This document shows positions 1 to 58,700 of a stretch of DNA of 64,000 nucleotides, one piece after another. Position numbers and translations under genes: made by a program. The stretch spans positions 3,266,778 to 3,330,777 of the forward strand of contig NC_134030.1 in assembly GCF_964204645.1 (NCBI RefSeq), given 5' to 3'. The first letter of the stretch is position 1, and every line of letters begins with the position of its first letter. Origin of the DNA: Tubulanus polymorphus (taxonomy: Eukaryota; Animalia; Nemertea). The notes beneath the pieces were generated by a model. The model saw only the letters and a program-made list of their open reading frames with translations, did no database searches and was not told the origin of the DNA.

Positions 1-3000
1 CTGGTGGGCCTTGAAGTCCCTGGGCACCGGGTGGACCAGTCGCTCCAGCTTCTCCGGGTTTTCCATCTTGACCATTTTTACCCTGTAACATGAACATGCT
101 CGTTAGCTGAAATTACTCATCATATTCGAAAGCAGCAGGTACCGTGTTGATATCAATAACTTACTGGTTTTCCTCGCACGCCTGGTTTACCATCTCGTCC
201 AGATCGACCGGTAGATCCCTGAAAAATGCAATACAAATTAGATTATCGAATACGAATTAGACGATAGTGAAATCAATATGGTCGAATTGTTTGTAACACT
301 TACCCTAGTTCCGGGCATACCCATTGGTCCTGGTGGTCCAGTATCACCTGACGAGCCCTTATCACCGGCTTGTCCTGTTGCTCCTGTCTCTCCAGACTCG
401 CCTTTTGGTCCTGGTGATCCATTAGCACCTGGTAAACCACGTCCACCTGGACTACCACGTTCACCACGTGAACCAGCTGGTCCGGGTAAACCGTCAGCAC
501 CACGCGCTCCTCGCTTTCCGTCTTCACCTCTCGGACCTGCAGAACCAGTTTCTCCTGGGGCACCGTTCAGACCCTTAGTACCAGGTGATCCTGGCGCACC
601 AGATGGACCTGGTGGTCCTGGCTGTCCTCGAGAGCCTGGGGTACCGCTATCACCAGCGGCTCCTGGGGGTCCTTGGGCACCGGGGAATCCTGGTGCTCCT
701 GCCATACCGGTCTCTCCCTGAAGTTGCAAAAAACAGCGTATAGATATTGAAGAATGAAATAAGATCATCACGTATATTCGTGCAATACATACGCGTTCTC
801 CTTTTTCACCAGCTGGTCCAGAAGGTCCAGAACTTCCAGGTGTTCCGGGGCCGCCGGATGGGCCTGCTGAACCCGGTTCACCTCGGGGTCCTTGAAGACC
901 AACGCTACCCTTCGGTCCACCTGGTCCACGGTCACCTTTTGCTCCAACACCTCCGGGGAAACCAGGAGGACCAGATTGGCCGACTGTACCCATTGGACCT
1001 GCTGGTCCTGGAAGACCATCAACACCGCGCAGACCCTACAAAATATGATAATTATCGTGACGATTTTCTATAAAAAATGTCCATCATTCAGAATGTATGA
1101 TACGAAACATGTACTTACTGCTGGTCCTGCGGAACCATCTCGCCCACGCTCTCCATTTGGTCCTCGTGGGCCCTTGAAAAGTACAAAACAATTGATTAGT
1201 TGATAAATTCACTATCGCAGTGTTTTACGTAATTTTCTAAATAGAAAATACATCGAATCAGTTTGAATTCGTCTCGCAAAAGAGCTAATGGGACTTACCA
1301 TTGGGCCGTGCGCACCTGGTGGACCAGCTTCTCCACCGGGACCCTAAAATGGATATATGAAGGTATGAACATTGAATGTAGTCTAACTAATTCATAATAA
1401 GATATCTGCAAGTGTAAAGTAGCTTACTTTCTCTCCCTGTCTTCCTTGTTCTCCTTTAGCGCCTGCTCGACCCGGGTATCCCTGAAAAATTTATAATGTA
1501 TATGTATTAATCATTTGAATATTCGCTGTGAAAAGAAAATGCTGTCCATTATAGAAAATTAGTTCTTTGAAGATAGATGAAAGTCATTTATAGAAGTCAT
1601 AGAAATTGAATTTCCAGATATTCTAAGACAGGCGGTAGATTTATAACTTACGGCGTGTCCTTTCATTCCTGACATGCCTGGCATTCCTGGTGGTCCTCGG
1701 CCTCCGGATGGTCCGGGGGGCCCTCTCGGGCCAGGGTCGCCATCTCTTCCGTCATCGCCAGGTTTACCATCACGTCCTGTCGATCCAGGGGGTCCACGTT
1801 GTCCAGTAGGTCCTGGTGGTCCGGCATCACCGGGTTCACCTCGCATGCCTGCGAATCCTGGTACACCCTACAAACGATTTGATGGAAAATTATATTTTCA
1901 AACAACAAATAAAACAAATATATCTGTTTCCCGAACATGTTATCGTTCTATCTAGTTATACGTACTGGAGCACCTGCTGGTCCTGGTGGGCCACGTTGTC
2001 CTGGTCGTCCCTAAAATAAAGATTTAAAATCAAAAGATACCGATCTCGAAAAGAGGAGTAAACTCGAAAATCTACGTGAATGTGATACGTACAACAGGAG
2101 AATGCATGAAACTTGGTCTTGGTCCTTGAGCTGGTCCAGGTCCTTTTTGTTGGTTCTGATACTCACTCAGATAGTCAGCATATGAACTTTCCTGCAAATA
2201 GAAATTCATCCAATCATGCACGAGATTTATCTTCAATTCATTTTAATGTTGTTGTTTCTTGTCGATAACTAGAACGCAATGATTTATATATTGAATAAAT
2301 GATTATTATTCGTTGTGCCTAAAATCCATTTTTAAGATATGCAAAACCATCGATTGGAAGTATTGATGAATATATCGGTATTGAGATGGCATTTTAAAAC
2401 AGCGATTGATGGCCCATATTTAATCGGACTATCATTCATTCAGTTGCTTTTGGTTAGCAACTTACAGCTGGCTGAGGACCTGATGGTCCTGGTGGTCCTG
2501 GAATACCATTATCACCATCATAACCAGGGTCACCCTAGAATAGAAATACAACACGAGTGTAACCGATTGTTCAAAAAATCGAACTATAAAATCAGCCGTT
2601 TCGAAATATATGAAATGAATAATTGATTCAATTGTGGTTTACATTGAATCACTGCTTCATTGTTCACCTACCATTGGACCCTTTCTACCCTTGCGACCTC
2701 GTCTTCCTGTACGGCCAGGTGAGCCGATTCGCTGTGGACGGAATCTGGGCGGGACGGGCGTTCCCATTGCCGTAACCTCCTGAATAAATACATCCATACA
2801 AAAATGATAAGATACCCTGCACAGGGGAATTCTGAAATCAGATTTTTTGTTCGTATTCGAAAAAAGTGTGTAAAGTTACCTCTCCAGTTTCCGCAGCTCC
2901 AAACATTTCATTTTGAAGATTTTTGAATGCTTTCTTCTGTGTGTATGTGGTCTCATCTGCGCAAAAATACACAGATAATACATACACGAGGTTTTCACAT

Positions 3001-6000
3001 GAAATCCGTGCGAACGTATTTCAATCGTTAATCGAAAATCAACAGGTAAAATATGGTAAATTGCCACTGTCTTGTTTCACTAACGGTCAGAATGACCTCC
3101 GTGAAAACATTATTCCTAGATTTGATATGCTCACAAATGATATGGTACCGATTTTAATGTTTTAGTCACGGGTTCGAGAGTTAAGTAATACATACCTATA
3201 CAGACAGGGCAGCATTCACCCTTCGGCGTTTCCGTATCGTATTCGTCGCAATCAAGTGTCGGACATTTTTTATATTTACAATCAAGTTCTCCTGAATTGC
3301 AAACACATTCGAAACAAGGATCGTCATCGCCATATGGCAACCATTTATGTCCGTGCGGTATCTTTTCGTCATTATACGTGCATCCCAGTGCCTTTTCCTC
3401 TGAAAATTCAGGAAAAAAAAACAATAATGATCAAATTGTTTGTAACATGTAATCACGATAGACATACCACCCATGTTATAACCAAAATATCTCACAGTTT
3501 AATCGACTAATTTTGAGATCTCAAAAAGTATGAGATGGTTAACTATTTCAAATAGAGAACAGTTAACGCATGGATGCCCTCATAATCTTGTCAATAGAAA
3601 TATTTTGAAATGCATTAAGGATAAATGGGATTTTTCCGTAGTTCACTGTAAGAATTACACTCATTTCAATAGAACATCGAAAATGAACTCGCGATTGTTT
3701 ACATGAATAACCGAACAACAATGGCTTTGTAAAACCAGGTTCAGTAAAACATCTGGGCCCAGTTCCATAGTCATGGCTTAGACTAAAGTCCAGCCTAAGA
3801 CCATCTTAGTTCTATAGCCAATCTAACAACTTAAGACCGGTCTTGCAATTTAAGACCATTTTTGGACTTAAGTCTCAACTGAGGAACCAGCCCCAGAGTT
3901 CAGCGAATACTGCAGTGAAATCTGAGTTTAAATGCTTAGATTAAAAATTATTGTAAAGCCTAATCAGTATGCCTAATAATGACCGTTCATTTATAGATGA
4001 CCAAGAGTAAAATTACGAGCGAATTCTTGACGACGCGTTCTTCAATCCTAAACGTTTATTTCTGTGGTTTTAATTAAAAGTAACCCGAACTCCTGAACGG
4101 CGCAGACAGTTATCGTCGATTGCGATAACTTTTGTTATTCTGTACCCGAAAAATTCCTCGCTGAATAAACACACTACACCGAGTACGGCAAAAAACCTCG
4201 GAAGCCGCGCGCACTGACACGGAATTCTATTTGTTCTGGCGCTGGTTTTTTTCGTATATATTCTAATTAAGTAGCGATAATAAAGCGGCGCCGTTTTTTC
4301 AAGAGATTGTCTGAAGACAACTTGCAAAAAGCGGATACACTTTTTGATCAGTAAGAGAGATTTTTCCCAGGAGAAAAGCGGCACATTTTGTAACCGCAGT
4401 TTCAGTGATTTAGGCCAGATCCGGATATCGCGTTTTAGGCTGTAGATATTTTTCAGTTACGCAATAAGACAAAACTTGTAAACAAATAAATCTTTTCAAG
4501 ATCTCAGATGTTTGTGAATAAAGTGAATAACAAACATATTCATATTACATAAACCGTAGACTTTGCCTTTGCGCGGGACTTTTAACTATTTTCTCCGCGT
4601 TGAGAATCAAGGAAAAATAGATTTTTTGTTGAATTCTTTTGAATTATTATTCAATTCACTGATTTAAACGAATAGACCAGCTCAGAGTATGTATGGCACA
4701 GTCGGCTGCTACATGATTAACACTTTTTGAATGGATCGATCTCTCGTGTACATAAACAATGACTTGAAGAATTTTTTTTGCGTTTTTGACTTATTTGCTC
4801 GGGCCCCTCTCCCTTCTCTTACTCTCTACGTGAGTCTTTACGCAACGAACGCGGCATTGACTCATAGATAAACACATCGAGAGAAAGGTCGCGCCCTGAA
4901 ACGAGTAGCTAACCCGATTCACAACATTCGTAAACATCTCCAGATGCGATGAAAAAACAGACGACCGATCGACCTTGACACGGGAAAAAAATAATCATAT
5001 AAGACCACCCTCATTAACTCTGTTTACTCAAGATCTAACAAACGTTTCTACGAACGATCAGACAAAAACGTGATCATAAATTCGAATTACTTCGACTATG
5101 GTTCGATCACTGTTGCTGGTCAAATAAACAAGATGTAGAGACAAGTCGCGCAACAACATTTCGAATAACTTTAGCGAACTGATATAAATCTCAGTATGGT
5201 TAACGAATAAAAACCCACGGTAGATTTGTCGAAACAGTACTATATTTCCTATCACATAACTATATACAGCGATTCATGCCTTATTTTATTTAAAATCTGT
5301 TTATAAAACGTATTTAGATTTCAAATATTGGTAGTAAGCACCCGAAATATTTCTATTGTTTGATTCAAAGACCAATAAGAGAAGAGCATCATGATTCAAT
5401 AAGTGATTTCTGATGATTTTACTTTGATTATTTTTTTAATTGAGGAAAAGAAGTTTTTTAGGCAAACGTCTGCAATTATTCGCTGTAAACAATGAACTAT
5501 TTTGACGTACAAATTGGTTGAAACCGACTTGTTGTGTCTAGACGAAAGTTCATGATCGCAGCATAAGTGGAGAAGGCAGATGTTAATCAGCTGTTGGGCA
5601 CTGATACTGACAATATGACCGCACTCGAAATTCTGTCGGTTTCTAGGGAATTGGTGTAACTTGACAGAAGATAGTCCTACAGATTACGAATTGCAAAATA
5701 CGAAAATTGAATTGATAAATCCAAGATGATAGATGATTAAGAATAATTGAGTGACCCCAAAAAATCTACGAGATGAATTAGGCAATGACGATCTAACCAC
5801 AAAACAAAAAAAAGGATCTAAATTTCCTCCTCCCTTCGAGCTTCAGCGGCATTCGAGGTTTTGCTTGGCCCTCATAGTTAACATATCCCATGCATTTCTT
5901 TGCGTGCATCATAGAAACAGATTAACTTGCATTTATCAACTCTGACTTGAACTTTAGCTTCACATTCACTAAAGGTTTTTAGACGTTTATCAGTGAAGTA

Positions 6001-11259: not shown

Positions 11260-17126
<5,867 letters not shown>

Positions 17127-46700: not shown

Positions 46701-49700
46701 TAACTATACTGCTAATTGAATAGGTAAGATTTTAATAATGGCTCATAGAATCAAGTTGAAATGTCAATACTTTCTATGTTTTACTTTGTAATTCTGCGTC
46801 TTTTCTTCGATCGACTTTGACAGACGCTTGTCTGTAGAGACGAGCTGTACTGCCAAAATTGACAAGGTTAAAGCACCAAATATTCTTTCAAAATAAAAGT
46901 TCCAGTTTCACGAAAAGGTTGTAAACGCATAAATTTCGGTTTATTAGCTGCTGATTATTTGTTTCAACTTTTTCATGAAACTGGACCTCGAAGATAAATC
47001 TTACTCAAAGCAAAATTATCAGTGTCACCACCATCAGGGACAGTATCTTCAGTTTCTAAATTTTTATCAATATCCGCTAATACATCAGATATATCGCTAA
47101 CGCGACATTTCATGAAACAAGATGAAAGTTTCGGTCCGAAATATCTCTTCCAACAACTCGTATCCGTCCTACATCTCTTCAGGACCATCATTAACTTTCG
47201 TTTAGTAATTCCTAAACATTTAGTTAAACATCTTAGGCTCAATGTTAAACGAGCATTTTCTGGACCAGCTGAAAATAACATTTCTACAATTACTCCGTGG
47301 AAGAAAATGTATACACGTTGTAACTTTATAGAAATAAAAAAGAGTCTGAAATGTTTAGTAGTTAATTGAATGTTTCAAATCGGTTTATCAAAATAGTCAT
47401 ATATAAAGTAAAGCTGTAGGGGAGATGTTTTAACCTGTGGTCAAATCAAAGATGAAGAGCACTTGAATGAGTTAACTTGATCTCATCAAAAGTATGAGTT
47501 TTCTCTTCTTATTTCCACTAGTGCAGAATAGCTTCATCAGGTGAATTCTACTGATAAAGCTACTATGCACTAGTAGAAAAAGTAGCAAAATCTCATGTTC
47601 TCGATTACATTAATCCATCCCCAAGTTTACTTAAGTAAAGTTACAACTGTCGCGGCAATACAGCGTTTAACGGATTCACAATCGATGATTTGGTTTAGCT
47701 GCAAACTTTTGAAATAAAACAAACATCATAAGATAAATCTTACTCAACGCAACATTATCGGTATCGCCACGACCAGGGACCGTATCTTCAGCTTCTATGT
47801 GTCTATAAATATCTGCTAATATTTCAGATATATCTCCAGGTTTCCGGCTACATTTCACAATGCAAAACATTCTCGGCCCGAAATATCTCTTCCAACAATA
47901 GACATTCGTCCTACATATCTTCATGACCAGGATCAACTTGCGTTTGGTAACTCCTAAACATTTAGTTAAACACTTTATTACAACGCGAGCCTTACTTGCT
48001 GTCGTTTGTCCAATTGCGGTTTCTGATTCTGGACCATCTGAAAGAATAACATTTCCATAATTAATCATTGCGGAAGAAACTGCCTGACGACGGCTAATAG
48101 TCTTTAGCAAAAAACGTCGCGCAAATATATAAACCTTTTACTCAAGAACTTTTCATCTTTGACTGAATTATTGTGGGATTTCTTTCATTCCTTTTACACG
48201 GATATCGTGTATCTTTTCGATTAAGTTATGAATAAATAAAATAATTCCATTTTCTTTTAATCGAAAGATGGTCGATGAAATTAAGGTCGTTGAAATAGAC
48301 AGATATTGCTTAAAACCAATGCATGAAAACATTGTGAAAATACGAAGACAACCGATGACATTTAACAGAATAGAAATAATCTTTTCTTGTGTCTCCGCTG
48401 TTAAATGACTTATCGCATTTCACTGGTGTTTCAGCACATTATAGAGAGTCATGTGGTGCCAGACACAGCTATAAATAACACACGCACACAGCAGGCAACA
48501 GGTAGAACTAAATTGTCTTCATTCAGTCAGTAAGGAGCAAGAAATCAACACGCGCTCAGGTAAGATTAGTTCACTGTCGCTCATTCATAACAAACAACTC
48601 ACAGCAAAATTACCGCATACTTTATGTATCAGACTAAATCCATCGGTTGAATTTTATAAGATGAATTTGAAAACTCATATCTTTAGAAATATTCAAACTT
48701 GCAACTAATCTTATTCATCTGTAAATTTTAATTCTTGATAACGATAATTCACGTCGTATTTTAGATAACTACTTCACCTGCCCAGTTCATCATATACAGA
48801 TATTAGGCACACTGATTACAAGTAGAACGAAAATAGAAAAATATATTATCACTATTATATTTTCATGTGTTTTGCTGAATAAATTTGGACGAAATGACAA
48901 AATTTCAAAATTTTTCAGGATCAAGTCTATAAAGAATCATCATGGTGGTAAAAGTCGGAGAACTTTTCATGTCTAATGAGACCGATCATATGATGCTGAA
49001 TTGTCTGGGTATTTTCATATCCGTGTACTCCTTGTATATAGAACTTAAAGCGTTTAAAGACAAGAATTACAGAGCGTTTTGTGACTTCAATGAACACATG
49101 AGTTGTACCAGAGTATTGACATCAAAGTATGTTTAAAAATAAAATATCAAATTTCAATCCGATCAAAGAAGTCATTAAGAGTGTGATTATCATATTATTT
49201 CATGTTTCTATAGATATGGACAAGGCTTCGGTGTTGTGGAAGTTCTGTTTGGAAAAGAAAGCTACCTCAACGTACCAAATTGCTGTCTAGGAATTGTCTT
49301 CTACTGCCTTCAATTAATCCTGGGTAAGTTAAACTAAAACTAGTCGACCTCGCTAAAGCCGCCCTAATTAAGGATGAATTATTCAAATGCAACTTACGCG
49401 TATAAGTAAATAGAATCGGAAATACAAATTGAGACTCAGTAGAGAGAACTAAAGTAATTTGACAACTGTCAAGGATATATTTTCAGCTTGACAATTTGAA
49501 TAAATCTTGAGTATAGAATACTATAGTTAATGTGGTTTGTATTTACAGGTTCAATAGAAAGTGAATGGGCGATTTATCTGTTGGTTATAACATCGATAAT
49601 AGCGTGTATCGGTTCGGTTTATTTGGGAACCGTTTTATTTGTTATATTGAAAGATTTCTGTCTCGTTTGTATTTGTACGTACATCTTAAACGGTTGCTTA

Positions 49701-52700
49701 ATGTATCTTAACTACCAGAAATATATAGCTATGGATTTCATAGTATCGACACCGACTCAAGCCCCACCCCCACCGGTAATGAACATGCATCCTGAATACT
49801 AGAGTGTTTCCAAGTGTGATCTGATTTGTAATATTTCGTTTATAATTCAATTATCGGATGTCGTGTAATATTTGTACGAAGATTTTGTGAATAACGGTTA
49901 TGGTGATGATAAGTGAACACACTCCCACCAGGTGGCGATACCAGTACCAGCCGATTGAAACTTCATAGAGCAGTATATCATTAAGTACTGATTTGAAGAT
50001 GAAATTAGATTATTGTATTTTTTCGTTAAGTTTTCCACCACAAATGCTGCTAAAACTTGTATTAGTTTAATTGAAAATGAATAAATCATCTAGTTCTATA
50101 TAAGACATAATTCGTAAGTAAATTTTACTTTTGTTTCAAGCGCATTCTAGATCAATGAAGATAAACAACTCAATAAAAGTGAACTAATCTCAAATATGAG
50201 ATAACCACTGACGTAAACACTCTGCGCGTGTTGTAACAATACTACATTAATCCCACACTAAAGCCCGGCGCACACCCTTGCGATTGATCGTATGATCCTT
50301 TCATCGCATGGTTTTATCGCATCATCGTAAAGGTATGCGGTGGCATCCGGAGCCGATTTCATCGCATCATCGCTTCATCGCAACAAATCAAACTTGTTTG
50401 ATATTTTGCATGTGATTTTTCCGTGCGATGAAAATCGTAAAGGTGTGCGGGCTACGCTGTCGATGTTCAGAACGAACATTTTTAGTAGCCAATCGGAATT
50501 AACGATGAAGCAATCACGGGATGTTCAAAATGGCGGCTCAGTCACGTGATTGAATCCAACTCGAGGCCCTCATAAAAAATCGCAAAGGTATGCGGGAATG
50601 ATGCGATTTTCGTCGTGTCATCGCATGCGATGATACGATGACACGATGATCGCAAAGGTGTGCGCCCAGCTTAAGACCGAAAAATCTGAAATTTTTCTTA
50701 AGCAAGCTGATAGTCATCTTCAGGAATACTGTATTCTTGAAGATACAGTTATATAGTATTTCTAAAGATTAGAAAACACTCTATTCCCCAAAGATGACTA
50801 TTTAGAATATAGTCAAATCATAAGATAAAGCATTAGCTCAAGGAAGTATTTTGGACTTTTTCATTCTCAGTGCCATTGATTTTTATATCATCAAATATCA
50901 GATTTCTGCTGTTGTACGGTACTGGACAGTCATGTGGATGTGAGTTGATGGTTTTCTATCAAGGTGACATGTTGATCCCTCTTCATCATAAACTACAGGT
51001 GTTTTACGAGAGAGACAAAAGCCAGGTATAAAACAGCCGTGTGTCTGTGTAGCTATTATTACCACGAGCAACAGCAGCAGCTGTGCTGTCACAGAGAGAC
51101 TGCGGCTGTTCTTGACATTTTAGAGAAATTACTGCTGAATATGAATATCAGCCACACACAAATAGATTGTGAACTGAACGAATTACACAGTTCTACATAT
51201 TCTAACAATTTCAGCTAAAACTCTGTTGAAAACACAGTTTTAATTGGCTTCAAGAAAGTTGAATCGAATTCTTAATATCCTAGTTCAGAATTCTAAACAG
51301 GCAGCAAGAGATTCAATAGACTTGAGAATCAAAAACAAGTGAAGAACCCAGCTCTTTAGTTGTGAGTAAAAATGCGAAAAGGGCTGGTTCCATTTTCATG
51401 GTTTAGACTTAAGACCAGTCTAAGACCAACTTGGCCAACCATTTTTGGATATAAGTCCTGATGTGGAACTGGCCCTAAAGGTTTAGATAAACAAGTCTAA
51501 ATTTACTCCAGGGTCTAGTGTCACGAAAGAGTTAAAGCTTAAAACGGTTAAGTTTAATTCATATCCTCAATGACAACAAGAAGTAACAAACAGTGACTGA
51601 ACAAAAAATTGTGAGTTTAACTTCTTTGTGAAACTGGATCCTTCGTTCTAAACATAGAGACCTCTTACCTTCACTCAGTTCATCATTGCTTTCTTCGTTT
51701 TCCTCTCCATCAGCAGACGGAACTTGCGATTCTTCATCTATAAAAAAAAGAAGAATATTTTGTAATGCATGTGGTTGAGATTGGCTAAGATTGTGGCTAA
51801 GATTGCCACATCAAATAGTCCAGGTTCTGAGTAAAATAAGCAAGACCGCTGCTAATGCTTAAAAACTAACCTTCAGATTGTGGTAAATTGTCTTCGATCG
51901 ATTGTTCCGGTTCGCTGTATTCATCTATAATATACAAACAAAACTTGAAATTAAAGACATGAATGATGATCGGTATTTGGTAATCTTTTATTGGGATGTT
52001 TATCGTAACTATCGCTTCCATCTTGAGTTGTATATTTCAAGTCTGACATGAGAAATCCAATCAGTACTTAGTAAGTCCGATGATGGCTTATAGTATTTAG
52101 CCAAAATTTTGCTCGAAATATATATCATTTTACTAATAGAATTTTTCATTTTTGGCTAAATCTATTGTGGGATTGCTTTCGTCATTCATCTTACACGGAT
52201 ATAGCGTATCTTGTCCACTCATTTCAAGACTGATATTTAATGCAGCGAGATGATGCCCCAAGAACTATACTACATAAAACAAAGGCCGCTAGAATATTCA
52301 TAACAAGTGAAAGACTGTCAAAACAGTACCCACTAAATAGAGTGATAGATATTGCGATTTCTCCTGACGATTATTCAAAAATACTCCAGTTAATATTTCT
52401 GCATATGACTACATTAAGTAGACATACCATTGATTTTGAAGGGTCTGCACTCGGGCAGACATTGGTATACTCTGTATCCGAGAGTTTTCATCCAACAAGA
52501 AGGGAAGAGCCCACACTTTTTCTCGGCGTAAGCAATTTTTGACAGAGTAACATTCGAACATTTATTCATACAAGAATCAAATTTGTCGATAAAATCTGTG
52601 GACGAACAAAAACAGTATAGGAAAATATTGCAAGGCTGCATCTATAAAGCGATCAATACATTCATACGTGTTTGACAGGAGGACATTTCCAACTCAGGGA

Positions 52701-55700
52701 CACAGTTCAACATCTAACCTGAGAACTGTGTAATGTACAGGCATTCTTACTTACATATGAACATGCTGGCCCTGAAAGATGTAGAAACTTGATCCCCTTA
52801 ATAGCCAGGGGCCAGGGGCCGGTTCCATAGACAGGGCTTAGACTTAAGAACGGTCTAAGACTAACTAAGTTCTATAGCCAATCTAACAACTTAAGACCAG
52901 TCTTAAGGTTTAAGACCACTTTTGGTCTTAAGTCTTGACTATGGAACCGACCCCAGTTGCACAGTCGTGACTTAAGTCCAAAAGTGGTCTTAAATCTTAA
53001 GACTGGTCTTAAGTTGTTAGATAGGCTAAAGAACTAAGTTGGTCTTAGACTGGTCTTAAGTCTGAGCCATAACTATGCAACCGGCCCCAGGTCTCATTTG
53101 CAAGATACAATCAATTCTAGCATAGGTATGGAAGTAAGCCGAGGACTGCCTGCGCGTACCAACTTTTAATCATTCCCTTAATCATGAATATACGTATGCC
53201 AAATACATAGAATTATACATTTGATAAACAGACAAAAATATATCGAAAAAAGATCCAATACTTTTGAAACATGTTTCAGGTATTTTCAAAACAAAGTTTC
53301 CATGCAATATTTATGAGGAATCCTGGAAATGAAAACATGCAATTCTAGGACACAATTGTGGGAGCAAAAAAAGAGACAAACCTTCTTCATCAGCTGATGG
53401 CGAATTTTCCTGTTCTTCCATTTCAGAATCTTCTGTTGGGTTTGCTATCAAAAAAGCATAACCAATCATTATTTACTGATCTACAGGGTCCAGTTCCACA
53501 GTTCTGAGTTAAGATTTGACCATGGGTTAAAACATTGAAAATGAACTAACTTTAACTCAGAGTTAACTCTAACTCACAACTGTGGAACTGGGTCCTGATC
53601 TACTAATCGAAATGAAAAGCAAACACTCACAATTTTCAGAGAATTCATTAGATTCAATGATGTTCCGGTCATCGGGATATTCAGTTAACAAAGCAGTGGT
53701 GACAACTTCTTTCATATCGAAATCTTTGTGACCAATGCATCCGATTACACAACGAATCGCTCTAAAACCTGCCTTTTTGATCCAACATGCACGCGATGTA
53801 CCGCATTGAGCTATCCATTTCAATATCTTACGCTTTGATCTTCCGAGACATCTCAATAAACAACGAGTATAACCACGTCTCCCACGTCTCCCACATCTAC
53901 GGCGTCTACGTCTACGTGTTCTTCTACGTCTACGGGTTCTACGTCTACGTCGTCGGGTACTTCTTCTGCGTCGGTATCTACGTCTACGGTACCTGCGTCT
54001 GCGGACACGGTATCTACGCCTGCGGACACATCTTCTTCTGCGGACACGGTATCTACGCCTGCGGACACGGTATCTTCTTCTGCGGACACGGTATCTTCGT
54101 CTGCGGACACGGTATCTTCTTCTGCGGACACGGTATCTACGCCTGCGGACACATCTTCTCCGTCTGCGGACACGGTATCTTCTTCTTCTGCGGACACGGT
54201 ATCTTCTTCTGCGGACACGGTATCTACGCCTGCGGACACATCTTCTTCGTCTGCGGACACGGTATCTTCTTCTTCTGCGGACACGGTATCTTCTTCTGCG
54301 GACACGGTATCTTCTTCTGCGGACACGGTATCTTCCTCTGCGGACACGGTATCTTCTTCTGCGGACACGGTATCTTCGTCTGCGGACACGGTATCTTCTT
54401 CTGCGGACACATCTTCGGTATCGTCTTAGTGGTGAAGTCTTGGATGAGGCTAACTCTGGTATCATATCACCTGTAATCATTGAATGACATAAACAAATAT
54501 TCAAATGAAAGACAACAAAAAACTAGTAAATAACTTTTTATATATTAAAACTGGATCCAGTTTCAAAGTTCTTGGCAAACATTCACGGTTGTCAGGTCAT
54601 GAAGTATCTTGAGTCGAAACATTGAAAATTTACTATTTCCAAGTAAACGAACTAAACTAAGGACCGCACAACTGCATCCAGAACTGCAAAATTGAGTCTG
54701 AACTGCGGAACTGCGTCCAGAAGTGCGGAACTGGGTGCAGAACGAACTGCGGAACTGAGTCTAGTTCTGCAGAACTGGGTTCTGTCTTATCTATTTATAT
54801 CAGTGCACGTTCGTGCAAGGTGCATCACATAAATAACAAAGTATGAATGATTCTAGTTTAAAACTAACCTACCTTCAACTTTGGTCATTTCCATATTGTC
54901 AATCATCAACCGATTTTCAATACGTTTTCGACAGCTTTTAAAACAATGATAAGCTTTCTTGCCGATTTTACCGATCCAACATTGTAGATTAATATTACAC
55001 TCGATTCCCCATTTTATCAATTTCAATCGACCCAAGTGGGCGCATCTGCCCAAACATTTCACGAAGTGGCTTAAATTGTCTTCATTGAGTGCAGCAACAA
55101 ATTCTAAATGTGCGAGAGTGAATTGTACATGGCGCGCTACCCATAAACAGCTTACAACAATCCACAACCAAAACCCAGTGCAGTGATAAGTAGATAATTA
55201 CAGTGTTCCAGTTCTACGGTTCTCACTCAAGAGTTAAACACATTCGAAACAAACTAGTCCAAACTGAAACTGACCATCAACTCAACAATCACACCTAACA
55301 TCAACTTTCAAGTCAACTTTCACTTAAAATTTTAAGTCAAATTTAACTTCAACTCTGAAGACACAGTGAAATTCAACTATAGAGCGAATTTCAACTCAGA
55401 AATTAGAACAATGGAACTGGATACTGTGTTATACTATAATATATACTGTTAATGTGATTGTGTGCTATAAATATGATTACATAATGTGTTTTTATCTTTC
55501 TCGTGTCATTGAACTGTAACATTAAACTTCATCGCTTCGAAGATTTGTACCCATCACTAATAATAATGTTGTCTCTAGTGTAACATGAAACATGTTGTAT
55601 TTCTAGAAGTTTTCACTCACAGTTCAATGGCCACAAAAGTAAATAAATTGGGATCAGTAGCTCAAAAGGTGATTAGTCAACCAATGGATAACTGACATAC

Positions 55701-58700
55701 AGATAATAACAATTACAACTGGCTTGTTACTACCATATAGTATTTATCCAATGATTAACATAAACCAACTTTTAAGCAACCGCCCCTCCCCCGTCATATT
55801 GATAAAGTTCTGACCTTGAACGGCAGTGACCTCCACACTACCATGACGGGAGTTCATCTCATTGTCTTCAACGATGAACAAACACCTGCTGACGCATTTA
55901 GCAGCTTTACGCCCAATTTTTCTCAACCAACATTTGTAATCGGTGCGGCATTTCGCAAAGTATTTCAGCATTTTCCAGTGACTTTTTTTCAAACATCGTC
56001 CCATACATTTCAGGAATTTGTGCTTATTTTCTTCATTAAGTTCAATGAGTTCCGAATCTGTAACAAAATCAATATTTTTCACTCATATTCTACACACTAA
56101 GAATCAACTCATTCACTGTCGCCATAGTTCTTCCCATTTTCAACTATCTCGTAGTTGGCACTGAAACTATTTAGAGAATGAAGCTGAGTTTGTTCACACT
56201 ATCTGCCAATCATTCGTGTGTCCCAGTACAACTATCTTAGCAGTGAATAACCCCTTGAGGGTTTTAACTGCGTCCAGAAGTGCGGAACTGGGTGCAGAAC
56301 GAACTGCGGAACTGAGTCTAGTTCTGCAGAACTGGGTTCTGTCTTATCTATTTATATCAGTGCACGTGCGTGCAAGGTGCATCACATAAATAACAAAGTA
56401 TGAATGATTCTAGTTTAAAACTAACCTACCTTCAACTTTGGTCATTTCCATATTGTCAATCATCAACCGATTTTCAATACGTTTTCGACAGCTTTTAAAA
56501 CAATGATAAGCTTTCTTGCCGATTTTACCGATCCAACATTGTAGATTAATATTACACTCGATTCCCCATTTTATCAATTTCAATCGACCCACGTGGGCGC
56601 ATCTGCCCAAACATTTCACGAAGTGGCTTAAATTGTCTTCATTGAGTGCAGCAACAAATTCTAAATGTGCGAGAGTGAATTGTACATGGCGCGCTACCCA
56701 TAAACAGCTTACAACAATCCACAACCAAAACCCAGTGCAGTGATAAGTAGATAATTACAGTGTTCCAGTTCTACGGTTCTTGTTAAAATTTCACTCAAGA
56801 GTTAAACACATTCGAAACAAACTAGTCCAAACTGAAACTGACCATCAACTCAACAATCACACCTAACATCAACTTGACACAGTGAAATTCAACTATAGAG
56901 CGAATCTCAACTCAGAAATTAGAACAATGGAACTGGATACTGTGTTATACTGTAATATATACTGTTAATGTGATTGCGTGCTATAAATATGATTACATAA
57001 TGTGTTTTTATCTTTCTCGTGTCATTGAACTGTAACATTAAACTTCATCGCTTCGAAGATTTGTACCCATCACTAATAACAATGTTGTCTCTAGTGTAAC
57101 ATGAAACATGTTGTATTTCTAGAAGTTTTCACTCACAGTTCAATGGCCACAAAAGTAAATAAATTGGGATCAGTAGCTCAAAAGGTGATTAGTCAACCAA
57201 TGGATAACTGACATACAGATAATAACAATTACAACTGGCTTGTTACTACCATATAGTATTTATCCAATGATTAACATAAACCAACTTTTAAGCAACCGCC
57301 CCTCCCCTGTCATATTGATAAAGTTCTGACCTTGAACGGCAGTGACCTCCACACTACCATCACGGGAGTTCATCTCATTGTCTTCAACGATGAACAAACA
57401 CCTGCTGACGCATTTAGCAGCTTTACGCCCAATTTTTCTCAACCAACATTTGTAATCGGTGCGGCATTTCGCAAAGTATTTCAGCATTTTCCAGTGACTT
57501 TTTTTCAAACATCGTCCCATACATTTCAGGAATTTGTGCTTATTTTCTTCATTAAGTTCAATGAGTTCCGAATCTGTAACAAAATCAATATTTTTCACTC
57601 ATATTCTACACACTAAGAATCAACTCATTCACTGTCGCCATAGTTCTTCCCATTTTCAACTATCTCGTAGTTGGCACTGAAACTATTTAGAGAATGAAGC
57701 TGAGTTTGTTCACACTATCTGCCAATGTATTCGTGTGTCCCAGTACAACTATCTTAGCAGTGAATAACCCCTTGAGGGTTTTGATAGCTTCTGGAGTCAA
57801 TTTTCCCAGGGTTTCAATAAATATACGCCCAAAACCTTTAAGAGGTTTTGAGAAGGATCAACTACTCATGGTGGCAGAACTGAAACTATGAGTTACATGT
57901 AGTGGCAATGGTAGTACAACCGGAACTATGAGATATTTCTATCAAATTAAAACATGTTAAAATGAATTAATTGAAATTGTATTGAAATAACTACCTTCTG
58001 GTTCACTATTCAGTTCGATGTCATTTTCATTTTCTGATTCCGGTTCAATTTGATTTTCATCAACTTCTAAAAACAAGAATGCATTTAATTGAAAACTGAA
58101 CTGGTCATAAGTTGATGATCACCTCGTGAAACACTGAACAAAATTCTGCGGCAAAACAACATAGTTACTGAAGAATAATGGACTTCCTTGACCGCAACTT
58201 TGACAAGCAGAGATTCGATCCTCTCATGCTGGCAAGCGAGGATCGACCAGGTGCACCAGTGGTCATTCTTTTGAGCTTCGATTTCTTCTATATTGCGATC
58301 AAAATCAAATAATTTTTTCTCTGGAGTCAATTAACTATTGTTCATAAATACATCAAACTCAAAGAATATCATAGCAAAGTCAAGAATATCTGTTTAGAGG
58401 CTTGTATGAGTTGAAAAATCCAGAATTCGAAGTTGATTGAAAATAAATGTATGACTGACGCCTGCTGGCGGCTTAAGCTCGATTTATGAGTTGTGTGTCG
58501 GAGTTAAAGATCTTTTTCATAGAAGCATCTAGAAAAGACTGATGTCTGAATTGTAACAGGATTACTAACCACGGAATTTATAGATGCACTTGTTGAGACA
58601 TTGAAGAGCCTTCCAGCCAAGTTCTGACATCCAGCAAACCCTATTAATTTTACACTTTGAGAACAACTGCATAGCTTTATACAGATCTATACCACAGCAC

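Follow-up and report, generated by a model that had tools for sequence, protein, structure and literature searches.

An intact VKORC1-family gene whose located exons lie antisense in the largest intron of an apparently orphan multi-module gene of Tubulanus polymorphus

In the 64,000-nucleotide stretch of Tubulanus polymorphus DNA that was analysed (the window), a gene on the plus strand lies opposite a host gene of secretory type with 18 Cys-rich modules on the minus strand, and on its sequence it is an intact VKORC1-family gene with the catalytic residues kept. It is, on balance, probably an ordinary member of that family, whose coding exons came to lie in the largest intron of the host by genomic accident, and no dedicated partnership between the two genes is needed. 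Genes nested antisense in introns are frequent among metazoans, and they usually have no functional link to their hosts. A functional link between this VKOR and its host is unlikely, and the two genes are presumably uncoupled.

The VKOR exons that were located are the following.

48435-48559, plus strand: non-coding 5′ exon of VKOR, internal, with a good acceptor at 48433-34 and the donor at 48560; in X4, the contig piece 48433-48555 continues at 48915, with a 4-letter ambiguity in the alignment.
48919-49126, plus strand: VKOR coding exon 1, with the ATG at 48942; encodes the N-terminus, TM1 and the loop that bears the two conserved Cys, and ends in phase 2; X4 piece 48915-49126.
49214-49323, plus strand: VKOR coding exon 2, which encodes the cap/loop and TM2 and carries the conserved Asn; X4 piece 49214-49322.
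49549-50044, plus strand: VKOR coding exon 3 and 3′ UTR, TM3-TM4 with the CLVC active site and the stop at 49800-49802; X4 piece 49548-50044.

Run X4, whose kind is not on record, was read as RNA on account of the splicing seen in its contigs. Every predicted VKOR intron was reproduced by one spliced X4 contig (1045 nt, depth 22.9), which is joined at approximately 48559 to 48919, 49126 to 49214 and 49323 to 49549 and continues to 50044; an AATAAA is found at 50080, 3′ of exon 3. The coding parts of the exons are 48942-49126, 49214-49323 and 49549-49802 on the plus strand. Four variants were observed in these coding parts in the sequencing runs, and the fact that three are synonymous (the fourth is Leu to Phe) fits purifying selection.

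To assign the gene to its family, the exons were compared singly rather than as a joined protein, both in the searches and in the trees. The Pfam VKOR profile (PF07884, cut-off 27.5 bits) matched exon 1 with an E-value of 9e-10 and 39.3 bits, and exon 3 alone with 1.5e-5 and 25.6 bits. In the whole-genome profile scan the nested VKOR reached 47.9 bits, or 81.8 bits with the in-frame neighbouring matches. Matches to the solved chains of human VKORC1 (6wv3) and pufferfish VKOR-like (6wv9) were obtained for each exon. Exon 1 was aligned to 6wv3 and 6wv8, and both loop Cys, which we take to be human C43 and C51, fall together with the subsequent Thr-Ser in equivalent columns of 6wv3. Exon 2 scored 28.6-30.4 bits against the solved VKOR chains across all 36 residues, with the Pro-Asn column kept; the quinone-site Asn of this exon is presumably human N80. 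Exon 3 scored 49.7 bits against 6wv9 and 48.8 bits against 6wv3, and its CLVC aligns with CIVC, with the subsequent Thr-Tyr kept. The profile, the alignments and the spliced X4 contig together bear out the description, in an earlier note on this DNA, of a complete three-exon VKORC1-family gene with both loop Cys and the CxxC. The product is probably an active enzyme of the ER membrane, where it would use electrons from PDI-like partners, passed via the CxxC and the pair of loop Cys, to reduce the epoxide or quinone of vitamin K. Its output would then feed GGCX-like carboxylases and add to general disulfide formation.

The features of the host gene that surround these exons are listed below.

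41466-61841, minus strand: body of the host gene, in which 17 modules are complete and one is split; the modules have the form C-x3-C ... C-x5-C-W ... C-x3-C, from a regex scan and alignment.
47744-48037, minus strand: exon M10 of the host (294 nt, phase 1-1), which encodes a single 6-Cys module flanked by acidic stretches.
48038-51668, minus strand: host intron around the VKOR exons, 3,631 nt, the largest in the array, with dispersed repeats; X4 joint 48037 to 51669.
51669-51737, minus strand: acidic spacer exon of the host, whose 22 codons include 10 for Asp/Glu and none for Lys/Arg; joints 48037 to 51669 and 51737 to 51871; X4 bin depth 31,703.
51871-51924, minus strand: host acidic spacer exon; joint 51737 to 51871; depth 15,020, 3 contigs.

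The intron that the earlier note had proposed at 48038-51668 is real, as on the minus strand RNA contigs connect exon 51669-51737 with 47744-48037. The joint was seen in two X4 contigs, and its CT..AC ends correspond to GT..AG on the minus strand. M10 is covered by an X4 contig (47744-48007) at depth 4688 with zero mismatches. In the DNA runs, very high depth was observed at 50200-50800 and 51200-51600 within the intron. Each module has six invariant Cys in the alignment, and a 3-helix model was predicted for it with a pLDDT of 87; M10 is strongly basic (17 Lys/Arg), and the spacers are Glu-rich. The modules gave no Pfam match, no PDB sequence match, no Foldseek match and no Atlas match. When the module profile was run genome-wide, all 17 matches fell within 41466-61841 and none beyond, which is to say within approximately 20 kb of 268 Mb. 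By these searches, the module family appears to be an orphan that is lineage-restricted and confined to one locus. An identity of the modules with parborlysin or cytotoxin-A was considered and rejected, as no support was found for it and the profile matches nothing outside the window. Also rejected was an allele lacking VKOR, read from a joint in the DNA runs (48183 to 52184) that skips 4000 letters: 48086-48218 and 52079-52215 are 78% alike, many contigs have unlike continuations past 48183, the shorter side of the joint is only 21 letters, and extra letters stand between the two sides.

The start of the VKOR gene departs from the earlier description. All four located exons lie inside 48038-51668, and the 104 nucleotides at the 5′ end of the VKOR contig match nowhere in 47400-53399. 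Because the exon 48435-48559 is entered via an acceptor and these upstream letters are unplaced, 48470 is not the start of the gene, and the transcription unit may extend past the host intron. The TATA-like motif at approximately 48471, which had been taken as the gene's own, falls within this internal exon. Thus, the antisense position within the intron stands for the located exons, and the placement of the gene start at 48470 does not. VKOR and the host may be interleaved rather than purely nested.

If the VKOR transcript began beyond the host intron and ran antisense across host exons, the two genes could be coupled by transcription with no biochemical link, such that transcription of one dampens the other and expression becomes mutually exclusive. 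The entry of the contig into 48435-48559 via an acceptor and the absence of the 104 letters from 47400-53399, by which the first exon may sit beyond M10, are in favor of this reading, as is the very unequal expression of VKOR and host in one run. However, an assembly chimera may account for the 104 letters. We consider this coupling improbable. In the same run, X4, the depth of the VKOR contig was 23 compared to 4,688-31,703 for the flanking host exons. The contig depth of one bulk run is compatible with co-expression in the same gland cells.

The genome-wide profile scan located a second intact VKOR at G000:C2:382990-383837 (the C2 copy), so the count of VKOR paralogues is two and the nested gene is not the single housekeeping copy that the earlier note had held out as evidence against a pairing. 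The C2 copy has three coding exons with the same intron phases as the nested copy, a CIVC and intact catalytic residues, and the two are approximately 48% identical, exon by exon. The shared exons and intron phases at this level of identity indicate that the duplication was old and DNA-based. A second VKOR leaves the nested copy free to specialise. For exons 1 and 2, which encode the luminal loop and cap that face the redox partners, the nested copy scored 28 and 29 bits against vertebrate VKORs compared to 38-44 and 39-42 bits for the C2 copy, and the nested copy is thus farther from the vertebrates than C2.

In an exon-3 tree of 36 rows, the nested VKOR was placed in a 96/93 clade with a sequence from the annelid Paralvinella and other invertebrate sequences, and the C2 copy was placed in a separate 96/90 clade, most members of which are without names. 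A tree uniting both paralogues was 14 lnL worse, with a borderline p-AU of 0.06; an exon-3 tree of 119 rows was without resolution. Host-type modules were absent near the Paralvinella VKOR and on its contig, near the L022 relative, near P0010 (a 14-kb contig) and within 20 kb of the C2 copy. The closest exon-3 relatives, P0002 and P0003, are on metagenome contigs of 0.8-1.2 kb without gene context. Word-based searches with exon 3 of the window VKOR and with module M10 gave no match. Because the VKOR lineage predates the host family, either the module array grew around VKOR or a VKOR copy landed in an intron. By the first route, a tandemly expanding array would have enclosed a resident VKOR; by the second, a DNA-level copy complete with its introns would have been inserted into an intron of the host.

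A disulfide- or Gla-related enzyme inside the sole gene needing approximately 54 disulfides is a striking coincidence, one that was noticed post hoc. The nested VKOR could be a gland-specific paralogue that is kept in the host gene by joint switching-on and that provides oxidising equivalents, or else vitamin K hydroquinone for Gla, in the maturation of the 18-module product, a proposal to which we give little credence. In its oxidative form, the paralogue would be co-expressed with the host in a shared chromatin domain and would re-oxidise PDI-type partners to meet the disulfide load of the modules. Such a role is consistent with the contribution that VKOR makes to disulfide formation in the ER of human cells (PMC3364168). 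With two VKOR paralogues one can specialise, and the exons that are the more diverged in the nested copy are the partner-facing exons 1 and 2. The host is found at very high depth with six invariant Cys per module, and the confident 3-helix model would fit a disulfide-stapled unit. However, the VKOR contig lies approximately 200-1000-fold below the host exons in depth in the same run, and convergent transcription through a heavily transcribed intron would be expected to hinder co-expression. The clade of the nested copy also includes an annelid gene without such a host, and no other ER-folding gene is found within the window. A role of the nested VKOR as a dedicated folding helper is, therefore, doubtful.

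The earlier note had also raised the case in which the host is two genes that flank VKOR. If two adjacent module genes were present, the observed splice would represent rare read-through, and the depth of the bridging contigs (63 compared to thousands for the flanking exons) and the absence of X4 depth on the module exon 52414-52641 are consistent with this. The X4 contigs nevertheless splice the host across VKOR. The exon 51669-51737 ends in a donor with the frame open and no stop, M10 begins at a phase 1 acceptor and so cannot be a first exon, and contigs on 51669 and upward continue with 11 letters identical to the beginning of M10. No unique expressed exon was found on the minus strand of 48038-51668. 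Two host genes are thus quite unlikely.

Least likely of all, and in our judgment very improbable, is that, as for cone-snail peptides, the nested VKOR feeds a carboxylase which makes Ca2+-binding Gla from Glu of the spacers or modules: two HTTM/GGCX-like loci (on C4) and the Glu-rich spacers speak for it, but Pfam Gla gave no match to the eight host module exons searched at E up to 10, three classical Gla-domain exons elsewhere (on C1) account for the vitamin K cycle, the acidic spacers beside basic modules are more simply explained as putative charge-neutralising propieces, no carboxylase recognition signal could be defined, and a nemertean toxin review is without any word starting with "carboxyl".

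Accidental nesting of an ordinary VKOR accordingly remains the preferred reading. In summary, two GGCX-like genes and two VKOR paralogues of old origin are found in the genome, and one of the VKORs lies antisense in an intron of a multi-module gene that is apparently an orphan and is expressed at an extremely high level. A functional pairing would be a rare instance, among animals, of a peptide precursor with its own maturation enzyme, a counterpart of the gene clusters that combine a precursor with its tailoring enzyme. It would then offer a handle on the massive disulfide load of secretory glands, and on Gla peptides outside vertebrates and cone snails. The step to a functional pairing is not supported by the present evidence.

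In bacterial VKOR-thioredoxin fusions and DsbB-type systems, VKOR is physically tied to the disulfide machinery by protein fusion or operon, a tie of the kind that underlies the pairing proposed in the earlier note, whereas the VKOR described here is only intron-nested, on the opposite strand and with no shared transcript. The cone-snail system of gamma-carboxylation offers a parallel, VKOR and GGCX-like genes being present in an invertebrate that secretes Cys-rich peptides in abundance, but it differs in that no recognition propeptide was identified here. To our knowledge, no Gla has been demonstrated in nemertean peptides, and we know of no genomic linkage of the Conus carboxylation enzymes to toxin genes.

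Compared to vertebrate VKORC1 and VKORC1L1 (human 6wv3, pufferfish 6wv9), all three coding exons of the nested VKOR align, and the loop Cys pair, the CxxC and the quinone-site Asn and Tyr are kept; the three-coding-exon layout is presumably common to them as well. The nested copy differs in having CLVC for CIVC, several extra Cys, extra 5′ non-coding exons, a diverged N-terminal half and a C-terminal tail that is Pro-rich and lacks a Lys-rich end. In contrast, the C2 copy has a long Lys-rich tail, and its exons 1 and 2 are closer to those of vertebrate VKORs. With respect to the intron-nested antisense genes of metazoans, the unplaced 5′ part of VKOR may set this pair apart by making it interleaved. 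The likeness to such genes is otherwise that of a small gene on the opposite strand, in the largest intron of its host and with no exon overlap among the exons located.

The VKORC1-family gene within the host intron was found in three ORF pieces on the + strand, and Pfam VKOR (PF07884) matched the + strand ORFs of exon 1 (E 9e-10, 39.3 bits) and exon 3 (E 1.5e-5). Comparisons were made one exon at a time rather than with a joined protein, and the solved human VKORC1 and pufferfish VKOR-like chains were matches for every exon in these single-exon searches. The alignments to the solved chains showed both loop Cys, the Thr-Ser that follows them and the quinone-site Asn, with an active site of CLVC followed by Thr-Tyr. 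The exons of the nested gene, and the neighboring host exon, are as follows:

48435-48559, + strand: internal non-coding exon of the VKOR gene (from an X4 contig and the acceptor), which holds a TATA-like motif at about 48471
48919-49126, + strand: VKOR coding exon 1 (DNA reading), ATG at 48942, phase 2 at its end
49214-49323, + strand: VKOR coding exon 2 (DNA reading), phase 1 at its end
From 49549, stop at 49800-49802, + strand: VKOR coding exon 3 (DNA reading)
47744-48037, - strand: host exon M10, 294 nt, phase 1-1

Contigs from four sequencing runs (X1-X4) were placed on 47400-53399. The run type is not recorded, and X4 was taken as RNA and X1-X3 as DNA from contig behavior, because the X4 contigs are spliced while the introns are contiguously covered in X1-X3. 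One X4 contig of 1045 nt (depth 22.9) was placed on 48433-48555, 48915-49126, 49214-49322 and 49548-50044, and reproduced every predicted VKOR intron within alignment ambiguity; an AATAAA lies at 50080, beyond its 3' end. Pfam, the solved-chain alignments and this spliced contig agree on a three-exon VKORC1-family gene with both loop Cys and the CxxC, as the earlier note had described, and the nested gene is real and expressed. It is apparently under constraint, and three of the four coding variants across the runs were synonymous, the other being Leu>Phe.

The RNA that confirmed the nested gene also corrected its promoter and start. The 5'-most placed part of the contig begins exactly at a polypyrimidine-AG acceptor (48433-34), and 104 further 5' letters match nowhere in 47400-53399. 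The motif at about 48471, previously taken as the gene's own TATA, therefore lies inside an internal exon and is not a promoter, and the gene does not start at 48470 but has at least one further 5' exon upstream. Unless the contig is chimeric, the transcription unit starts outside 47400-53399, and it may run antisense through host exon M10. Another X4 contig (depth 7.1) is unspliced across the acceptor of the non-coding exon, 48287-48436 (+/-), and could reflect a retained intron, a different start site or pre-mRNA of the host.

The host modules, 17 complete and one split, span 41466-61841 on the minus strand with the pattern C-x3-C ... C-x5-C-W ... C-x3-C, in which the C-W is invariant in the 6-Cys modules. 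A host splice from 51669 to 48037, with minus-strand GT..AG ends, is present in X4 contigs. The intron 48038-51668 is therefore real and the host is spliced across VKOR, which argues against the alternative that the polyprotein is two genes flanking VKOR. Host contigs also join 51871 to 51737. The contigs bridging the intron had a depth of 63 in X4, which we read as graph fragmentation or isoform diversity because the frame of exon 51669-51737 stays open up to its donor, M10 starts at a phase 1 acceptor, and contigs on 51669 and upward continue into the M10-start letters. At the M10 donor, the loose contig end was a mixture of M9 (47269) and M8 (46553) starts; thus either exon can follow M10, and M9, which is left out in the second case, appears to be a cassette exon. 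The number of modules per host transcript may be variable.

Several other features of the locus were observed. The module exon at 52414-52641 (-), phase 1-1 with acceptor and donor intact, had zero X4 depth though covered in DNA run X1, and may be skipped, stage-specific or dead. The tract at 53853-54410 (-) has, besides an Arg-rich frame, a second open minus-strand frame that would encode an acidic Glu-Asp-Thr-Val repeat similar to the spacers beside M9 and M10. A two-module unit is near-identically duplicated at 54853-57598 (-; modules 54931/55882 and 56488/57398), which reflects recent growth of the array by tandem duplication. Dispersed repeats within or beside the VKOR-bearing intron (50200-50800, 51200-51600 and 52800-53200) were very deep in the DNA runs. 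An apparent 4-kb deletion joint near VKOR was false, and was the product of a same-orientation, 78%-alike repeat pair (48086-48218 and 52079-52215).

The module profile matched only the host locus in a genome-wide search of 268 Mb, and no relative of the modules was found by Pfam, PDB, word-search, Atlas or Foldseek. A confident three-helix unit (pLDDT 87) was predicted by AlphaFold from the module alignment. The X4 depth of host exons ranged from 4,688 (M10 contig) to 31,703 (bin mean), compared to 22.9 for the VKOR contig. The host is therefore a multi-module orphan gene, restricted to this locus and expressed at a very high level.

The nested gene is not a single housekeeping VKOR, as the genome-wide count found a second, intact copy on another contig (C2:382990-383837, +). 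The C2 copy shares its three-coding-exon layout and intron phases with the nested copy, has CIVC as well as both loop Cys, and ends in a long Lys-rich tail; the two are about 48% identical, exon by exon. Against the solved vertebrate chains, the C2 copy scored 38-44 bits in exon 1 and 39-42 in exon 2, compared to 27-28 and 29-30 for the nested copy, while exon 3 scores were similar. In a tree of exon 3 only (36 rows, 62 columns), the nested VKOR fell in a 96/93 clade of invertebrate sequences that includes an annotated VKOR of the annelid Paralvinella palmiformis, and the C2 copy in a separate 96/90 clade; constraining the two together was 14 lnL worse (p-AU 0.06). On this tree the duplication looks old, with 62 columns too few for proof. 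On one Paralvinella contig (JAODUP010000184.1), two oppositely oriented VKOR genes, at 638-5843 (-) and 13139-15694 (+), share a stretch of about 15 kb, and VKOR duplication therefore recurs in spiralians. A database protein of 1709 aa (P0013), with six separate VKOR-like stretches, may be genuinely multi-VKOR or the result of gene-model fusion.

The proposal that the pair is a precursor and modifying-enzyme cassette survives because neither a single VKOR nor two flanking genes was found. However, nothing positive in this analysis supports a meaningful nesting, and a functional pairing of host and VKOR is improbable. No host-type modules were found within 20 kb of the C2 VKOR, near the Paralvinella VKOR, or near the VKOR relative on a further contig (L022). 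The VKOR lineage predates the orphan host. In the simplest history, the array would have grown tandemly around a resident VKOR, or an intron-containing DNA copy of VKOR would have landed in the intron. The host locus occupies only about 20 kb of 268 Mb, so that the coincidence seems strong, although the pairing was picked out post hoc in a scan of thousands of windows. The window's other recognized genes, a fibrillar collagen with a VWC domain, an Abl-interactor and a PP2C-like gene, are unremarkable.

With regard to Gla, the charge counts suggest that the acidic spacers beside the strongly basic modules are more simply explained as neutralizing propieces than as Gla substrates. Contig C4 carries two HTTM/GGCX-like loci, at 22870456-22875087 (-) and 26599240-26601150 (+). 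The latter is compact and its matched pieces are separated by stops, which may reflect short introns or a gene in decay. Contig C1 has three classical Gla-domain exons in a span of 16 kb (7846358-7862812, +), and together with the C4 loci they indicate that the vitamin K cycle has conventional clients. With regard to disulfides, VKOR contributes to their formation in the ER of human cells (PMC3364168), and the idea of the nested VKOR as a folding helper would therefore be biochemically sound.
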